From Ginkgo biloba (Eukaryota; Plantae; Ginkgophyta): 24,304 nucleotides of DNA. The position numbers and the translations under genes were made by a program. Shown one piece after another: positions 2,205-19,086 of the stretch. The stretch spans positions 103,247,851 to 103,272,154 of the forward strand of contig JANKJI020000002.1 in NCBI GenBank assembly GCA_024626585.2. The letters run 5' to 3'. Position 1 is the first letter of the stretch. The number at the start of each line of letters is the position of its first letter. The notes below the pieces were generated by a model. It did no database searches. It was not told the DNA's origin and saw only the letters and a list, made by a program, of their open reading frames with translations.

Positions 2205-3987
2205 TAACAAATGAGGGGTGGTTGAACACGCCAACGTTTTTAGTATCATGGCATAGTANNNNNNNNNNNNNNNNNNNNNNNNNNNNNNNNNNNNNNNNNN
2301 NNNNNNNNNNNNNNNNNNNNNNNNNNNNNNNNNNNNNNNNNNNNNNNNNNNNNNNNNNNNNNNNNNNNNNNNNNNNNNNNATTAAAATTATAAAAAAATG
2401 GTAAATTTTTTAGAAGAATTTAGCTTATTTGCGAATCTCATTTTTAAAAATTTTGAAAAAAAATAGCCAATTGGCTATATATAGCCACTAGGATTTTCCT
2501 TGAAATAAACACACAAATCTATAAAGTTTTGTATTAAATACTTCAATGATTTAATAATATTATAAAGACATAATTTATTCAAATTAATTCATAATTTTAT
2601 TCATTAACAAATAAGGGGATGTTTGGACAAGCTAATTACTACAAAATAATGATCAATAAATCTTTATTCATTACTTACTTTATAATGATTTATGTTTTAA
2701 ATAAATACCATCTATCAAATAAAGACAAATATTTATAAAATTTTGTATTAAATACTTTAGTGATTTAATAATATTATTAAAGGCATACTTTAATCAAATT
2801 AATTCATAATTTTACTCACTAACAAATGAGAGGGTGGTCAAACATACCAATTATTACAAAATAATAATAAAAAAATCTTTATTTATTACTTACTTTATAA
2901 TGATTTATATGTTTTAGATAAATATCATCTATTTGATAAAGACAAAGCTTATAGTAATTTATAATTTTGCATTCAACACCTTAGTAATTTAAGAATATTA
3001 TTGAAGACATACTTTAATCAAAGTAATTCATAATTTTATTCATTAATAAATGAGGGAGTGATTGAACATGCAAATATTTTTAGTATTATAGTATATGAGT
3101 CTTATATCCATGTAAATAATTGTCATGATTATGTAATTTTCAATAATCACATTCGGTAAACATGTATATATAGGAAAAGGTGGCAAAGATTTTTTTAAGT
3201 AGGGGTTCTATAATTTGAGGAAACCATATGCATACTCTTTGAAGCTATTCACCCCAATATCAAAGCCCTAAGTTATCTCTAAACATTGCTAGTAACAAAT
3301 ATTTTCCACATTTATTTTAGAATGGATTATACAAAGCTCTTCATAATGAAGAAACAAGTCCTTGGTGTCATAGGTTGATGCAATTGTAATATTGAGCATC
3401 TTATAGGGTTGTAACAATGCAAATAAATGTGGAGAAAGGGTCGTGGAAGGATTGTACAATTTTTGTTTTTTTTAAAGAAATTACTTATGGCAAATAATTT
3501 TTCTCTCATCAGGATTCCAATCCATCTCTAGTGTTTGTCCCCTATTTTTGGATCATCTTGCCCCATTCCTTCTCTCTCATCCTATCCTTTCCTTCATNNN
3601 NNNNNNNNNNNNNNNNNNNNNNNNNNNNNNNNNNNNNNNNNNNNNNNNNNNNNNNNNNNNNNNNNNNNNNNNNNNNNNNNNNNNNNNNNNNNNNNNNTAT
3701 GTAGATATATATTCTCATTAATGTATTAATATTAAATATTATTTGTAACAATTGTCACTAATTTTATTTAACTTTACATTCTTTTAATAATTTTTATATG
3801 AATTTTTCATTAATTAATAAAATAATGATTGAATGACATAAATAAATCCATATGTTAATTTTTATTAATGAATGTGTTATGAAATGAGCCCTTTTTGTTT
3901 TGATATGTTAGATTTTTTTTTCTTATTAATAAAGGTGTTTTTTCATACTAATGAGCGCTGGTCGATCGAACATGCCATTTTTTTAGT
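2205..3987 (+). mobile_element. Probable non-autonomous Helitron remnants with three 3' termini (ending ~2243, ~3083, ~3986)
   Basis: A GC-rich imperfect palindrome (ggggtggttgaacacgcc 2215-2232; variants at ~3055 and ~3955) ends ~10-11 nt before TTAG|T. This fits a Helitron hairpin plus a CTAG end deaminated to TTAG. No Rep/helicase seen. Confidence 0.5.
2515..3085. repeat. AT-rich tandem repeat, ~215-225 bp unit, ~2.6 copies
   Basis: ttttgtattaaatactt...gatttaataatatt recurs at ~2527, ~2741 and ~2965. aattcataatttta...aa(c/t)aaat(a/g)ag(g/a)g recurs at ~2586, ~2801 and ~3025. Confidence 0.88.
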
Positions 3988-4500
3988 ATATAGATATATA
4001 CTAAAAAAATATCACATTTGGTAAACATATATACACCAAAAATATTGTAGAGGTTTTTTTTAAGTAGGTGATCCATAATTTGGAGAAACCATATGCATAC
4101 TCCTCTAAATTGTTTGCCCCAACATCAAAGCCCTCGATTATCTTTGGACCTTGGTTGTGACAAATAATTGTCATGTTTGATCTAGAATGGATTCGACAAA
4201 GCTTCTCATAATGAAGAAATAGGTCTTCATTGTCATAGGCCAAAGCAATTGTAATATAAGGGATCTTATGGGGTTTTAACATTATAAATGAATATGGAAG
4301 ACGGGTTATGGAAGGACCATCAAATGCTTATTTTTTCAAGAAAATGATCTATGGTAAATAATTCTCCTCTCATCTCGTTTCCAACACATCTTTCGTCTCT
4401 AATGTCCCATTCCCTCTCTCTTATTTATATCCTGTCCCCCACCTCTTATCTTATTCTTGTCTTGTCTGCCATCTCCTTCCCATCTCTAGTTTTGTTCCCA
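3146..4500. repeat. Diverged direct duplication of a ~370-400 bp segment (3146-~3540 vs 4011-~4375, tail ~4480-4500), offset 865 bp
   Basis: Shared colinear blocks: atcacatt(c/t)ggtaaacat, gaaaccatatgcatactc, atcaaagccct, tagaatggatt, tcataatgaagaaa, gcaattgtaatat, ctctcatc. Confidence 0.9.
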
Positions 4501-8464: not shown

Positions 8465-10381
8465 TGCCTCAAAATAGGAGAAAAATTTAACATATAAGTC
8501 TTTTAGGACTATTCAAAATTAAAAGTTTGTATATTTTAGACATAAGATAAGTATGCAAATTATCTCACATTTAATAAATAAAATACAAAATTATCCTCAG
8601 ACCAAAAATTTTTAACCCCTTTAAGACTTAACTCCTCTTAATTCTAGGTCCATATTTTCTCTCCTCCAAGTGCTTATCCCACTTTAGCTTATCAATATGC
8701 TCATCAAGTATGATTAGTGCTATTATTAACTCTTAAATTAATCATATACAAGAAATAATAGGAACTAAAACTAACCTAAAAATATGTATTTAATTAATGT
8801 AGTGATTATTGTTTAGTATATCACATCATACCCTTCCTAGTAGTAATCCATGACCTACATTGATCTTTACACTAAGCCATCTTAATTAAATGAATAATTT
8901 ATTTAAGAGGGCCTATATATTGTCAATAGTTTAAATTATTTATTTTAATATGTTTCTTACTTAGACACCAAATCAAAAATCAAAATCTCATAGTCGACTA
9001 AACTGCATTATGAGTTGTGATCTCAACATCAAACATGGATCACATTGATATTTTTATAAATCTCTTCAATGGTGTGGGGAGTATGTAGTTATCATATTTC
9101 TTTGAGTTATAGGAATCCTAATNNNNNNNNNNNNNNNNNNNNNNNNNNNNNNNNNNNNNNNNNNNNNNNNNNNNNNNNNNNNNNNNNNNNNNNNNNNNNN
9201 NNNNNNNNNNNNNNNNNNNNNNNNNNNNNNNNNNNNNNNNNNNNNNNNNNNNNNNNNNNNNNNNNNNNNNNNNNNNNNNNNNNNNNNNNNNNNNNNNNNN
9301 NNNNNNNNNNNNNNNNNNNNNNNNNNNNNNNNNNNNNNNNNNNNNNNNNNNNNNNNNNNNNNNNNNNNNNNNNNNNNNNNNNNNNNNNNNNNNNNNNNNN
9401 NNNNNNNNNNNNNNNNNNAGAAAAGGAAACTATACTCACAGTAATTTTTTAAGATGATAAATATAGTTGTATTAAATCAAACACAAAGATACCTTTATCA
9501 TAATAATAAAATATAATAATAAGTAAATGAAATAGGCATCCAAGGCTCCAATTACTATCTGCTTATATGGAGGAACGATGAAGATTTGGTCAAATATTCA
9601 TAGTCCAAAATTTATTTTCTTACATATAGTGGCCTAGTGGAAATTTGCCTATCAAACCAAGACCAATAATAAAATGCAACATCAAATATAAATCCCTTGT
9701 GAGATGAATAAAAGATACAAAATATGGAAGAAACTACATGGATCATAGTGGCTATAACTTTGCTAATGGTAGTTGCCCTCTTTATCATATAAAGGAAACA
9801 AACTATACAATGGAAGAAAGCACATGGGATTACACTTGCCTCCATGCAATTTCCATTGCTTGGAGAGTCTCTCTAGTACTTTCTTTCATCAGATAAGTTT
9901 GTGGATGATCGTTGAAATTTGTAAGTAATTGCTTATAATTATCATATTATTTTCATCTTTTTTAGATGTGGTGTCTTAAACATATATTTTTTTTTATAAC
10001 TTGACAATATACTTGAGTAAATTATTTCTAATATTTATGAATTTATGTTGAATATGACACAAGTATGGGAATATATTTAGTACGACTCTATTAGGAGATC
10101 CTACAATCATCTGTACTAATCTAGAGGTTAATAAATTTTTACTATAAAATAATCAGTTGTTCACTGTACGATATCCACCTTTTACTAAACAACTAATGGG
10201 AAAGTGGAACATGGCCTTAACCCATGGAAAAATCGATAAGAAACTGTGTAGTGGATTTGATTTTTTTTATTGCCACTACACTTAAAGACTGCCTTCTCAC
10301 TCGAATTAAAAATGTTATCATTTTCAAACTTCAAAGCTGGTGGGATTAAGAATTATGAATGTTCTTGATAAAACTCAAGAT
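8465..10381 (+). repeat. ~1.9-kb segmental direct duplication, copy 1 (partner ~13765-15738): upstream region plus P450 exons 1-2
   Basis: Colinear shared blocks such as aaataggaga..., ccctttaagacttaactcctctta, tcacatcatacccttc, tttatttaagagggcctatatattgtcaata, cattatgagttgtgatctcaacat and agtggcctagtggaaat occur in both 8470-9660 and 13770-14955. Confidence 0.92.
9724..10381 (+). pseudogene. Truncated P450 pseudogene, copy A (exon 1 9724-9920, exon 2 10063-10381)
   Basis: Translates MEETTWIIVAITLLMVVALFII*RKQ...FPLLGESL*YFLSSDKFVDDR* / YGNIFSTTLLGDPTIICTNLEVNKFLL*N..., colinear with copy C. GTAAGT donor at 9921, acceptor mutated to cacAA, intron 2 donor GTGGGT at 10382. Several stops. Cut at ~10457 by an LTR. 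Confidence 0.92.
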
Positions 10382-10457
10382 GTGGGTTTAATTTTTAATA
10401 ATTTTATTATTAGGAAACTTTTTCATGATTTTTTAAAGTTTAATAAGTAGTGTTTTG

Positions 10458-11019
10458 TGTTATATTTATTCACTTATGTCTTTAATAAATACTTATAGTT
10501 GAGATGAAATTAAACCAATAAAAAAAATATGCAAGTAAGTTTTTGTCATCTAATAGAATTCTTTTAAGTTGCAAGCAAGTTTTTGTCAATTGACAAAAAA
10601 TTGTCCACACATAAAAGGCAAGTAGTTGATCGCAAGTGACTTTGCCTTTAACAGTCTAACATTTACTTACAGTAGGTATGCAAGTGATAATAGTGCATTA
10701 CACACATAGTAAACAAGAACAAAGAAAAGCACAAATCATAGTAGAGAGAAGTGGATAGAATCAACCTTTTTCCTTTTTAATAAGCACATGCATACATTAT
10801 AATGTACATATACATACATATATACATACATACATACATATATATATATGTACAACATAAAATCACAATAGCTCATGAGATTATAGTTACAAATTCAACC
10901 ATTGAGAAAATAAATCATTTTAATTTTGTAGGTGAATCATTTCATTTCAGCAGTCGAATCAATTCATTTATATAGTTGAATTACTTTCTATACACTCATA
11001 AATTGCTATATTTATAACA
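10458..11019 (-). repeat. Copia long terminal repeat (~562 bp)
   Basis: Bounded by a perfect 7-bp inverted repeat TGTTATA (10458-10464)...TATAACA (11013-11019). It is adjacent to the PPT and begins where A/B intron-2 homology stops. The partner LTR and TSD are not visible. Confidence 0.75.
10803..10852. repeat. (TACA)n/(TA)n microsatellite inside the copia LTR
   Basis: tacatatacatacatatatacatacatacatacatatatatatatgtaca read directly. Confidence 0.9.
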
Positions 11020-11884: not shown

Positions 11885-12766
11885 ATAAAATATTTTGGTG
11901 GAAGGAGTATGGGGAGCCTTTATTGGAAGTATCATAAGCCCTTTTCTCATAACATGAAAATATTATTTTAAAATTTAGAGTTCTTATCCTGGTGAAAGGC
12001 TGATGAGCTACCTGGCCATGAAGGAAAATTTCATCTGCCCTAAAATATATGCAATTAAACAAATCAATATTTGTTAAACTTTAGAAAAGCATGCAATTTT
12101 TTTTCAACTATAAAATGATCAATTAAACCCACATCTTGAGTTCCATTAGTAACATTCATAATTCTCCCTCCCCAACTTTTGAGATTCAAAATCATAATAG
12201 TTTCTATTTGGAGAAGAAGACTGTTTTTCAAAGCAACGATGTTGAGAAAACTCAAAGACACTCCACTCATTTTCTTATGGAAATTCCCACTTTCCCATCA
12301 GTTTTTAATAGTCTTGTCTTATTATTTAGCACCCATTTATTGATTTCAAGATAAGTTGAGAAAATCATGGGATATCCTAAGATTAATATGGTGAACATCT
12401 TACGATGTTTGTGACATAAAATTAATTAATTTAAAAATATTAGAGAAAATAAATTATTAGATAGATAGATAGATAATAATTTTATTAACATCCTCAGAAG
12501 AAGATAGACACTATAGAGAAATCATACCTGAGAAAAATATGATGAAAGGTTATCTTGATAGGAACTAACGATCTAATACACTTCACCACAAACTGTTGTG
12601 GGCAAAGAAATAATTGGAGAGACTCTCCCAGCTGTGGAAATCTCATGGAGCTAGGTGGAATCCCTTGTGCTTTCTACCATCGTATGGCATGTTTCCTTTC
12701 TATGACAAAATGAACAATTGTTAATGGCAGTGTTGAAACTACTATAATCCATGCAATTGTTTCCAT
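11885..12766 (-). pseudogene. Inverted truncated P450 pseudogene, copy B (exon 1 12766-12570, exon 2 ~12408-12133, exon 3 12034-11885)
   Basis: Minus strand reads METIAWIIVVSTLPLTIVHFVIERKHAIRW*KAQGIPPSSMRFPQLGESLQ..., then a deleted exon 2 ending ...WGGRIMNVTNGTQD, a GT-AG intron at 12132-12035, a 150-nt exon MKFSFMAR*LISLSPG*EL*ILK*YFHVMRKGLMILPIKAPHT..., and a GTAATC donor at 11884. Confidence 0.9.
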
Positions 12767-13764: not shown

Positions 13765-15738
13765 ATTTCAAAATAGGAGAAACATTTAACATAAGTCTTT
13801 TAGAACTATTCTAAATAAAAAGTTTGTATAATTCAAAAGTAAGATAAGTGTGCACATTATCTTACTTTTTGATAAATAAAATATAAAATTATCCTCGGAC
13901 CAAAAAGTTTTAATCCCTTTAAGACTTAACTCCTCTTAAGTGTAGGTCCATATGTTCTTTTCACTAGGTGCTTAGCTCACCTTAGCTCATCAAATACTAT
14001 TAGTGCTATAATTAACTCTTAAATTAATAGTATTATAAGAAATGAAAGTAACTCGTACTAACTCAAAAACATATATTTAACCAATGTATTGATTATTATT
14101 TAGTATATCACATCATACCCTTCTTAGTAGTGATTCATGCCTTGCATTGGTCTTGACATTGAGCCATCTTAATTAAATAAATAGTTTATTTAAGAGGGCC
14201 TATATATTGTCAATAATTTGAATTATTTAATTCAATATGTTTCCTCCTTAGACATGAAATCAAAAGTCAAAAGCTCAAACCCCATTATGAGTTGTGATCT
14301 CAACATTGAACATGGGTCACATTGAGGTTTTTACAAATCTCCTCAATGGTGTGGGGCCTATGTAGTTATCATATTTCCACGAGTTGTAGGAATCCTTATG
14401 ACCTCACATGTTGTTATAAAAGTTTTATGAAATGTATGTGAATAACTACAATCCTTAATCATGGGAAGCCAAGATTGATAGGGGTGATCTCCAATCTTAA
14501 TCCACCAAATGACAATATTAAGGCTAAATATCGATCTATAAGCTCCGAGTTGTGACTAATATACTTTCTTCCATAAAAAATTACATGTGACTTGAAGCAA
14601 TGAGTCTTGTACTTTGATAAATTCAAGTTTGCCTAATGAATGTTACGAAATCGAATACCAAACCGCCTCATACCTATTTAGCAAGTATGCAAGCAGAGGC
14701 AACCATACTAAGTAATTTCTGAAGATTACAAATATAGCTGTATTAAATCGAGGCGGCAATAATATAATATATCAAACACAAAGATGCCTTGGTCATAATA
14801 ATAAAATATAATAATAAGCACATGAAACGCGTATCGAGGGCTTCAATTACTGTGTAATTGTATCGATCCACCCTGCGAAGATTCGGGCAAACCTTCAAAA
14901 CACAATATTTGTTTGCTTACATCCAGTGGCCTAGTGGAAATCTGCCTATCAAACCAAGGCATTGCCAGATGAATTGAAAATAACGATCAGATGTAGCAAC
15001 CCTAAAGCCCTTGCCCTTGGTGATCAGATGTGGAAATCTGCGTATAAAGCCCTTGCCAGATAAATTGAAAATAAAAAATTATGGCAGAAACTGCATGGAT
15101 TGTAGTGGTTGCGACTCTGCTAGTGGTAGTCGCCCATTTTGTCATACAAAGGCAACACACCAGACGATGGCAGAAAGCATATGGGATTCCACCTGGCTCC
15201 ATGGGATTGCCATTGCTCGGAGAGTCTCTCCAGCACTTGCTTCAATGAGACAAGTTTGTGGATGATCGTCGGAAGTTGTAAGTGATTCCTTACAAGTATC
15301 GTATTATTTTCATAAGATGAGGTGGCTTTGAGATATAATTTTTTTTTCCCAATGTTTGAGTATAACTTGAGTAAATTGTTTCCAATATTTGTGAATTTCC
15401 AATGAATATGGCACAGGTAGGGAAATATGTTTAGTACGTCTCTGTTAGGACGTCCTACAGTCATCTGTACTGATCCAGAGGTCAACAAATTCGTGCTACA
15501 AAATGATCGCATGTTCGCTCCGCGATATCCACCTTCTGCTAAACAATTGATGGGAAAGTGGAACATGGCCTCAACGTGTGGCGAACACCACAAGAAACTG
15601 CGTGGAGTGGCTTTATGCTTTTTGAACGCCACTGCACTTAAAGATCGTCTTCTCGCCCGAATCGAAAATGTTATGATTTCCAAACTTCAAAGCTGGCCGG
15701 GAGGAAGAATTGTGAATGTTCTCGATGAAACTCAAGTA
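13765..15738 (+). repeat. Segmental direct duplication, copy 2 (partner ~8465-10381)
   Basis: Same colinear blocks as copy 1. This copy keeps many CpGs from ~14530 onward where copy 1 shows TG/CA. Confidence 0.92.
14930..15075 (+). promoter_or_regulatory. Putative proximal promoter/5' leader of P450 copy C with internal mosaic duplications
   Basis: gtggaaatctgc, gatcagatgt, aaagcccttgcc and ttgccagat(g/a)aattgaaaataa each occur twice. TATAAA at 15043-15048. Function is inferred from position only. Confidence 0.4.
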
Positions 15739-17348
15739 ATGACTTTATCTACCATGGCCCAAGAGCTTATTGGGTTTATGCTAGGGAATGAATTACAAAC
15801 TTTAAAACATGATTTTTATGTTTTCAAGAAGGGGTATGCTAATATCCCAATAAAGGATTTTGGTACTCTTTACAAAAACAACTTCAAGAAAAGGCAATAT
15901 ATAGTGAACCAGATCCAAAATATTATTGAAGACAAAAGAAAACTAATACATATCCNNNNNNNNNNNNNNNNNNNNNNNNNNNNNNNNNNNNNNNNNNNNN
16001 NNNNNNNNNNNNNNNNNNNNNNNNNNNNNNNNNNNNNNNNNNNNNNNNNNNNNNNNNNNNNNNNNNNNNNNNNNNNNNNNNNNNNNNNNNNNNNNNNNNN
16101 NNNNNNNNNNNNNNNNNNNNNNNNNNNNNNNNNNNNNNNNNNNNNNNNNNNNNNNNNNNNNNNNNNNNNNNNNNNNNNNNNNNNNNNNNNNNNNNNNNNN
16201 NNNNNNNNNNNNNNNNNNNNNNNNNNNNNNNNNNNNNNNNNNNNNNNNNNNNNNNNNNNNNNNNNNNNNNNNNNNNNNNNNNNNNNNNNNNNNNNNNNNN
16301 NNNNNNNNNNNNNNNNNNNNNNNNNNNNNNNNNNNNNNNNNNNNNNNNNNNNNNNNNNNNNNNNNNNNNNNNNNNNNNNNNNNNNNNNNNNNNNNNNNNN
16401 NNNNNNNNNNNNNNNNNNNNNNNNNNNNNNNNNNNNNNNNNNNNNNNNNNNNNNNNNNNNNNNNNNNNNNNNNNNNNNNNNNNNNNNNNNNNNNNNNNNN
16501 NNNNNNNNNNNNNCTAAAGGAAAAAGAAACCCAAGAGAGTAGCAAATTTTAGTTAACAACTGAACAAATCATGAATTTAATTTTGAATCTAAGTTTTGGT
16601 GGGTATGATACCACATCTAAGACTATGGCCTTTGTTGTGAAGTATCTATCAAAAAACCCATAAGTCATCTCAAAATTGAGGGTGGAACACAAAGCAATCA
16701 AACAAAATAAAAAGAAAAATGAATTGCTTTCATGGAAGAATTTTAAGTCAATGTGATTCACAAGAGATGTGATCAAAGAAACATTAAGATTATATCTGGG
16801 AATATCCACTAGATATTTTAGAGAAACTCTAGAAGGTGTAGAAATCAGAGGATATAAAATCCCTAAAGGATGGACATTCATAGTATGTGGAAGACCATGT
16901 GGCCTAAACAGCAGCAAGTACTATGAAGATCCTCTCAGCTTTAATCCACGGAGATGGCACGTATAATATTAATTGATGTATTATAGTAATTACATTGCCT
17001 CGGATTAACCATTGTATTGATGCGTGTCAAGTGATGTTGCAGCGAAGGGAGGTGATTCAAGCTCCCTTTACTCCATTCGGAGAAGGCATTCGGCTTTGCC
17101 CTGGATATGAGTTGGCGATGCTGCAAGTGTCGTTCTTCATCCATCATTTGGTCACAAAACTAAAGTAAGTCACAGCTAATGTCGAACTGATCTGAGGAAA
17201 GGCGCATTGGACATACCGGGAAGTGATTAATTTGTTGACTTAATGCAGGTGGGAGTTGATTGCTCCAGACGAAACCATAGCAGGTTGGTTAGGCTCTTTC
17301 AAGGTCGTCCTACCAAAGGATATCAAAATTCGAGCACAACATTTGTAA
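15081..17348 (+). pseudogene. Near full-length cytochrome P450 pseudogene, CYP85 clan (CYP720/CYP90/CYP724-like), copy C; exons 15081-15277, 15417-16960 (spans N gap 15956-16513), 17043-17164, 17249-17348
   Basis: Manual translation gives a TM anchor MAETAWIVVVATLLVVVAHFVI, Pro hinge IPPGSMGLPLLGESL, DPEVNKFVLQN, I-helix FGGYDTTS, K-helix ETLR, GYKIPKGW, FNPRRW, heme motif [10 protein letters not shown] and TAA at 17346-17348. GT-AG introns at 15278-15416, 16961-17042 and 17165-17248. In-frame stops: TGA 15246, TAG 15418, TAG 16550, TAA 16661, TGA 16754. Clan assignment is from recalled motifs and exon structure; the exact family is unresolved. Confidence 0.93.
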
Positions 17349-19086
17349 GCGACGAGTTCAACTTCATCGGCTAAGGTTGCTGTGTTTTCTTCGCATTCGA
17401 TGTCGTATATTTGGTTCTTCTAAAAGTCCAAAGTGGGACAATAAAGTACAGTTTTTTCTTCGTCAATTATTAGTATAAAGTGACGCTCCACTACCTTAGT
17501 TCTTTCCGAGGGTTGTTTTTATTAAACTTTTATTATATTTAAAAATAAATAAAATGTACTTCATCTGATAAGTAAAAGTTAAAAGCTTATTAGATCATCG
17601 CTCGTATCAATGCAAGTTAAACGGTTATTATATTATTAGTTTATGTATCAATGCATATTATTTTTAAAAATTATTAAAAAATAAANNNNNNNNNNNNNNN
17701 NNNNNNNNNNNNNNNNNNNNNNNNNNNNNNNNNNNNNNNNNNNNNNNNNNNNNNNNNNNNNNNNNNNNNNNNNNNNNNNNNNNNNTCTCGTAGTTGCTCT
17801 CTTTAGGGATGAAATCTTTGGAGGGTGTCACAAAGGGCAAATATTGACAACCATCTTAAGATTTAAAGGACCCATCAATTTATCCTCTAACTTGTAATTA
17901 TCCATGATATTTAGGAGATCTATCAACTAGGCAAAAATGCTAAACTGGGATGTTTTATTTTGGCTTCTTTATCAATATGATTAAATTATTTGACAAGAAT
18001 GTTATCTTGCAACTTTCACTTTCATCCTTAAAAATCATATAGTATGCCACAAAAACCTAGTTTTGCTCTATTCGTTAGTCCTACTTATTGTATGCAATAT
18101 AAATCTTTGTTAGTGTAATAAAGACATGATGTCTATTTTTAATCATTATCTTATTTTTAGTCTTTCCATTGATATAACAACTATTCTAAATTAAATGTAG
18201 ATTACTAGCGCTAACTTGTTGTGATATAATTTGATAGTCGAGATAGTAATTAAAGACCAAGTTCCATGATTGAGACTTCATTTTAGGCTCTTATAATGTG
18301 ACTCTCATGTTAAATGAAAGAAAAAAATTGACATTTCCTATGCTTAAAATATAAAGTCTTCAATTCAAATAAAAAAAGATGATCTAAGTAGTAAAAAGTT
18401 AATACATTCACTATCGTGAGATTTATTTTGAAGCTTCATGTGCTTCATTATGAAAGCCCTTTCTTATAATTATGACCACCACTAAAAGAAAAATACATCC
18501 ATCGTAATGATTAAAATTGATAATCCTCACAAAGTCATTCCAAGGCCCACTTTGCACTTGCTTTTGAAAAGAATTGAAATTATTTTCACTTTTTAATTTT
18601 TCTTCAAGGAGATCAATAAGAATTATAAATACAATTGATTTAGACCATATTGTGTTGATTCATTCTTAAAAGAAATCTTTAATAGAATGTTGTATAAAAT
18701 TACTCAAATTATTATGTCAATTTTATTTAATTTGTTGACAAATGAGAATCGACCCTTAGCCATACGAAAAAATGCAAAAATAAAACTATAACAATAAAAT
18801 TGCATTTAGTATATGAAGAGTGGACCAAGTGGTAAAGAGTCAATGATTTTATCAATATAACCAACGTTGATTTTACCATTATAACCAAGGTTTAAATCTT
18901 GGAGGTACATATATGACCTTTTTCTGCATTCCATATTTGTATAAAAAACCAAAAACAAATATTACATAAAATCAAGCTACATCAAANNNNNNNNNNNNNN
19001 NNNNNNNNNNNNNNNNNNNNNNNNNNNNNNNNNNNNNNNNNNNNNNNNNNNNNNNNNNNNNNNNNNNNNNNNNNNNNNNNNNNNNN

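Follow-up and report, generated by a model that had tools for sequence, protein, structure and literature searches.

Three relatives of one cytochrome P450 lie in the window, by which we mean the whole 24,304-nt stretch of Ginkgo biloba DNA analysed here. The third of them, copy C, is as assembled a mosaic of two dead relatives, G and R, which would both belong to one P450 subfamily of the CYP85 clan. G would be an intron-bearing, CpG-retaining pseudogene that contributes the upstream DNA, exons 1-2, the rest of exon 7 and exons 8-9, together with introns 1, 7 and 8. R, an old, C>T-decayed processed pseudogene (about 15737-16886), would have arisen from reverse transcription of a spliced mRNA. 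The direct observations are the intron-free junctions, a break in base composition, in-frame stops and, in other individuals, separate contigs of the G type and of the R type. With a confidence a little above even, we infer that the join between G and R is an artefact of short-read assembly or gap filling.

Gene structure and intron sites

The intron sites were set by mapping three relatives onto their own genes, namely the Diphasiastrum and Amborella homologues, with nine exons each, and Cajanus CYP90A1, with eight exons and only intron 1 missing. All three genes agree in the site and phase of introns 2-8, and the corresponding positions on copy C are 15738/9, 15888/9, 16681/2, 16768/9, 16850/1, 16960/1 and 17164/5. 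The initial annotation had stated that copy C reads through five junctions, at the last three of which genes such as CYP90A1 normally have introns, and that it retains introns 1, 7 and 8. These observations were borne out. The fused junctions are ETQV/MTLST (15738/9), NNFK/KRQ (15888/9), KLR/VEH (16681/2), FTRD/VIKE (16768/9) and EIRG/Y (16850/1). They coincide in site and phase with introns 2-6 of the relatives, and Cajanus CYP90A1 as well as the Diphasiastrum and Amborella genes carry introns at these places. Introns 1, 7 and 8 of copy C have GT-AG ends and ancestral phases. Compared with the three mapped genes, the absence of introns 2-6 from copy C is precise, falls at the ancestral sites and preserves the reading frame. 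The copy C exon lengths of 322, 150 and 87 nt are those of the lycophyte (Diphasiastrum) gene. The features discussed here are listed in Table 1.

Table 1. Positions of the P450 relatives and of the parts of copy C in the window
Feature	Position	Strand	Description
Copy A	8469-10458	+	5' pseudogene fragment: upstream DNA, exon 1, intron 1, exon 2, start of intron 2
Copy A exons	exon 1 9733-9912; exon 2 10064-10379	+	intron 2 starts ATGTGGGTTTAATTT at 10380
Copy B	11888-12766	-	5' pseudogene fragment with stops and frame breaks
Copy B exons	exon 1 12766-12587; exon 2 12407-12136; exon 3 12034-11888	-	intron 2 of ~100 nt
G-left	13768-15736	+	upstream DNA common with copy A, exon 1, intron 1, exon 2
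Copy C	15081-17348	+	P450 relative; introns 1, 7 and 8 present, sites 2-6 fused
Copy C exon 1	15081-15277	+	TGA at 15246
Copy C intron 1	15278-15416	+	GT-AG, ancestral phase
Copy C exon 2	15417-15738	+	TAG at 15418; CpG-rich
Left switch zone	15699-15736	+	X2 block-type contig begins 15699; X2 and X10 gene-type contigs depart 15734
Intron-free block	15737-16886	+	exons 3, 4, 5, 6 and first 36 nt of exon 7, fused
Assembly gap	15956-16513		nominal 558 N, inside exon 4
Right switch zone	16850-16886	+	X2 gene-type contig begins 16850; X10 block-type contigs depart 16886
G-right	16887-17348	+	remaining exon 7 (to 16960), intron 7, exon 8, intron 8, exon 9
Copy C intron 7	16961-17042	+	GT-AG, ancestral phase
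Copy C exon 8	17043-17164	+	haem-binding motif
Copy C intron 8	17165-17248	+	GT-AG, ancestral phase
Copy C exon 9	17249-17348	+	ends in stop codon

Copies A and B

Copy A contains several stops and is followed downstream by nothing P450-like. Intron 2 is present in copy A, and introns 2 and 3 in copy B, in agreement with the earlier description of intron-retaining copies next to copy C. Copies A and C have ~2 kb of DNA in common (8469-10379 versus 13768-15736) at 74-83% identity. The homology begins ~1.3 kb before the start codon, continues across exon 2 and ends at 15736, and the ~1.3 kb of common upstream DNA reported previously was recovered at this identity. The argument that dates the intron loss by the A/C duplication fails, because the block and its flanks have separate histories. 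The loose end ATGTGGGTTTAATTT at 15736 in contigs of runs X1 and X10 was considered as proof of an intron-bearing copy C and was dropped, as it is the start of copy A intron 2 (10380). Elsewhere in the window there are direct repeats at 2503-3075 (about 215-220 nt, 80-82% identity) and a separate repeat pair at 3146-3527 and 4011-4391 (about 380 nt, 74% identity).

Family assignment and decay of copy C

In all protein searches the exons of copy C were queried singly, never as one spliced model. Pfam p450 (PF00067) matched 16769-16963 (E=1.1e-13) and 17040-17165 (E=1.3e-6), and 15427-15954 matched it at E=0.0065, under the curated cut-off. The haem-binding motif FxxGxRxCxG lies at about 17073 in exon 8. 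The Pfam matches and the haem motif confirm the cytochrome P450 family, and on sequence grounds copy C is assigned to the CYP85 clan. Its nearest protein is Ginkgo Gb_27379 (P0001), with 68% identity. The nearest named protein is Ginkgo CYP798B1 (P0002), followed by CYP90-type proteins of the CYP85 clan. P0001 and P0002 are 47% identical to each other, and copy C has ~35-65% identity to P0002 exon by exon, the exons being compared singly and the family threshold being >40%. CYP798B has been mentioned in the literature as a family without characterised members (PMC9436924).

Segment-wise identity was considered as a separator of block and flanks and was dropped, since P0001 is nearest in every segment. 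Gb_27379 differs from the window at 16555-16605, where it has the I-helix region in a shifted frame, with NSRRNHGFNFESVFWW instead of EQIMNLILNLSFGG. The public Ginkgo model of this protein is without the last exon. Gb_27379 is itself probably a mis-modelled pseudogene of the retrocopy type.

Copy C has five in-frame stops, at 15246 (TGA), 15418 (TAG), 16550 (TAG), 16661 (TAA) and 16754 (TGA), and is therefore a pseudogene that encodes no working P450. The stops at 15246 and 15418 are also carried by the X2 individual, in a contig without differences from the 5' half of copy C. In the RNA run X24 no reads fell on the stretch in the ~6% of the run that was sampled, which is too little to judge expression.

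Composition and substitution bias

The block and the flanks of copy C have different histories. Exon 2 has a GC content of 0.45 and 17 CpG (observed/expected 1.06), whereas the block (15739-16886) has a GC content of 0.31 and 0 CpG in 590 nt. The CpG-free run extends from 15724 to 16948, the last CpG before the block being at 15723 and the next at 16949. GC is 0.43-0.48 in G-right, and 0.44-0.47 in exons 8 and 9. CpG observed/expected is 0.14-0.51 in the window background and in copies A and B, and against these values the flanks of copy C stand out as undecayed. The 3' flank of copy C (17350-17685) has a GC content of 0.28 yet contains 12 CpG (observed/expected 1.8), which is unusual beside the 0.31 of the window background.

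The substitutions differ in the same way. When the block was compared with P0001, 22.5 replacements were explicable by one C>T/G>A change and 2.0 by the reverse (about 11:1), whereas in the flanks the corresponding values were 12.7 and 13.3 (about 1:1). The same trend was found with P0003 and P0004 as references. Each of the three stops in the block (16550, 16661 and 16754) differs from a sense codon by a single C>T-type change, and at the place of the TGA at 16754 P0001 has Arg. The block is thus an old processed pseudogene, set between CpG-rich, intron-bearing gene parts, and it is not a fresh cDNA because of its CpG loss, low GC and 11:1 C>T/G>A bias. When a fresh cDNA recombines with its own gene, the same history is expected in block and flanks; the pattern seen here calls for a copy without introns that was already old and silenced. 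The initial annotation had proposed that a partial cDNA or a retrocopy replaced the centre of the gene. The retrocopy is the sole form of this proposal that fits the data; the fresh cDNA does not, as the block is far more decayed than its surroundings.

Contigs of other individuals

The contigs of X2 and X10 were compared over 41-49% of their number, with run-on sequences shown for 30 letters. One X2 contig (record 17; 1444 nt, depth 9.1, i.e. single-copy) matches 14920-15734 with 0 differences over 815 nt. Past 15734, its remaining 629 nt do not resemble the window except for a 30-nt rematch at 15805. This rematch may be read as G's own exon 3, and the stretch after 15734 as intron 2. Similarly, X10 record 11 has 0 differences over 15618-15734 and is then unlike the window. 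At the other end of the block, X2 record 22 matches exon 6 only (16769-16851, 93% identity) and is unlike the window to either side of it. The start of X2 record 23 falls exactly at 16850, the intron 6 site, and the contig extends from there as far as exon 9, with introns 7 and 8 and exon 8 included.

Contigs of the R type were found in the same individuals. The block is carried by X2 record 19, which begins at 15699. Over 16745-16886, X10 record 14 has 1 difference from the window; beyond this it continues with ATGAAAAATCATGTCTCCTTGAC, which encodes YEKSCLLDNN, a decayed exon 7. This peptide is a G>A/C>T-shifted form of the exon 7 in the window and is close to YEKSCRLDSN of P0001. The loose end of record 14 is common to four X10 contigs. 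Two individuals from two studies therefore hold G and R as separate sequences, and the window switches between them within 15699-15736 and within 16850-16886. A chimeric join of a gene and an unlinked retrocopy at 15738/9 had been named in advance as the finding that would speak against intron loss, and the contigs come part of the way to it: exon 2 departs after 15734 in X2 and X10, and the block departs after 16886 in X10. The G/R join was not found among the X2 and X10 contigs covered (41-49%). When the 176-aa ORF that spans the left join was used in a protein word search, no match was obtained among ORFs on the contigs of the other runs.

Apart from the window, run X1 alone showed the join. 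In X1, 100% of the sampled words were present, with 0 differences from the window throughout. X1 contigs at a depth of about 73-79 (14700-15952 and 16627-17685) pass through both switch zones without interruption, and the block is at single-copy depth. X1 has a total of 1.6 Gb of contigs at a uniform depth of about 75, compared with about 8 Gb in other runs. X1 may be the assembly's own source, or may be derived from the assembly. The two gap edges in X1 are fused without letters, as expected of scaffold-derived sequence from which the Ns were removed. One X1 contig (depth 79) joins 16769 to 16849 and skips 79 nt, which is near, but not exactly, the 82-nt exon 6; it carries the retrocopy-type A at 16887. 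It may represent another retrocopy, made from an exon-6-skipped transcript, or a deletion variant.

The assembly gap inside exon 4

The window has 20 N gaps in 24.3 kb and a GC content of about 0.30, and is part of a very fragmented draft. Eight of the gaps measure exactly 100 N, with a spacing of 1.1-2.5 kb (about 1.1-1.3 kb in most cases), and occur among others of variable size (19-558 N), a pattern that suggests scaffolding in two stages, one of them inserting gaps of unknown size.

At the site of the gap inside exon 4, the three mapped relatives all lack an intron. The 418-nt X2 record 19 covers 15699-15944, then has 37 other letters, and then continues with 16514-16648. The bridge translates as EDKRKL-SLDTNKDFILFL-LKEKE, and its counterpart in P0001 is EDRRKL-SLGPHEDLLSFL-LKEKE. 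With the bridge, exon 4 is 261 nt long, compared with 258 in the lycophyte. The two sides of the gap are thus continuous and in frame in the X2 individual, and the true gap is tens of bases. Since X2 bridges it with 37 in-frame letters, the nominal 558 is ~530 nt too long. In X1, a 165-nt contig fuses 15955 straight to 16514 and thereby disrupts the reading frame. Just ahead of the gap, the 11 letters at 15945-15955 (AATACATATCC) differ from the X2 bridging contig (CTCACTTGATACTAATAAAGAT), and are either an indel allele or a faulty contig end.

In the scaffold, 1112 nt separate the end of exon 2 from the start of exon 7, and the fused exons need ~580 nt of this. The excess of ~532 nt is about that of five introns of local size (139, 82, 84 and ~100 nt). 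Because of this fit, the data suggest that the scaffolding read pairs saw an intron-bearing gene.

Origin of the join

The artefactual join is favoured because G and R are unjoined in X2 and X10, because of the gap arithmetic and the doubtful status of X1, and because of the prior odds. In so fragmented a draft, chimeric contigs and gap fills occur far more often than private conversions of 1 kb. R reads would have been threaded between exon 2 and exon 7 of G via short stretches common to both, and the real locus in the tree would still have introns 2-6. A counter-argument comes from X1: if it consists of ordinary reads of a real tree, the join is present in the DNA of that tree. The mosaic would then be real, with ectopic gene conversion or a double crossover putting ~1.15 kb of R into G. 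Introns 2-6 and G's exons 3-6 would have been erased in one step, and the converted allele would be young and rare, because other trees keep G and R apart. The X1 contigs agree with such a conversion in spanning both switch zones with 0 differences, at a depth of about 75 and with a single-copy block, and G-left is identical to X2 over 815 nt, as for alleles. The decay signature of the donor within the block is also the predicted trace of conversion by a processed pseudogene (PMC3652778). On the other hand, the X2 and X10 contigs covered do not contain the join, and X1 may be the source of the assembly or derived from it. A surviving donor R should double the depth of the block and break the X1 contigs, neither of which is seen, and only heterozygosity of the tree would account for the 558-N gap. 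Moreover, private conversions at a single locus are a priori far rarer than chimeric contigs in such a draft. We therefore regard a real mosaic as a possible but less likely explanation of copy C.

The two remaining explanations involve a single gene. Introns 2-6 may have been lost long ago in place via the gene's own cDNA, the centre then decaying faster than the flanks. Five adjacent introns precisely missing is a classic hallmark of reverse transcriptase (PMC3652778), but this reading is improbable in view of the composition break at the block edges: no process is known that spares exons 1, 2, 8 and 9 of the same dead gene. Moreover, the block is found with its own decayed exon 7 in X10, and G-left continues differently in X2 and X10. 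Even less credible is that the whole of copy C is a semi-processed retrocopy of a partly spliced pre-mRNA with introns 1, 7 and 8. Although partial intron retention is possible in retrocopies, the ~1.3 kb of upstream DNA common with copy A, at 74-83% identity, makes the left part of copy C a DNA-level duplicate, and the composition break is left unexplained.

Comparison with known systems

Both partners are dead genes, so that no working enzyme is at stake under either an artificial or a real join. If the join is an artefact, copy C provides a worked example of a retrocopy threaded into a parent-like gene, which mimics block intron loss in a fragmented draft, and scans for lost introns in drafts of this kind should check base composition as well as reads. 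A real join that segregates among trees would be a rare instance in which donor, recipient and product can all be observed in living trees, so that the processed-pseudogene sub-model of intron loss could be tested directly.

In this sub-model of reverse-transcriptase-mediated intron loss, described by Zhu & Niu (2013), an intronless processed pseudogene converts the genomic gene, and exon sequence near the lost introns is predicted to resemble the pseudogene; no convincing case was found in their mouse and rat data (PMC3652778). Copy C is similar to the prediction in that adjacent internal introns are precisely absent and the nearby exons resemble a processed pseudogene more than they do the remaining gene. 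It differs in that both partners are dead, the join has been seen only in the assembly and its likely source, and the unconverted form is found elsewhere. Compared with plant P450 retrocopies, the block is likewise intron-free at five ancestral sites, has stops and has lost its CpGs. Unlike them, it has no poly-A or target-site duplication in the window and sits between intron-bearing exons, and its own flanks are known solely as loose ends in contigs of other individuals. With the CYP798 family and the CYP85 clan, which have the 8- to 9-exon structure of CYP90A1-type genes, copy C has in common the p450 matches, the FxxGxRxCxG motif of exon 8, and the intron sites and phases, but its identity to Ginkgo proteins is 47-68% and it has five stops. 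The last comparison is with chimeric de Bruijn contigs and gap fills in paralog-rich regions. The repetition of the join in X1 is unlike these, being unexpected if X1 consists of independent real reads. In contrast, the switches lie in ~36-38 nt common to two paralogs and the N run is consistent with intron-bearing spacing, in a region with 20 gaps in 24 kb, all of which resembles such chimeric assemblies.
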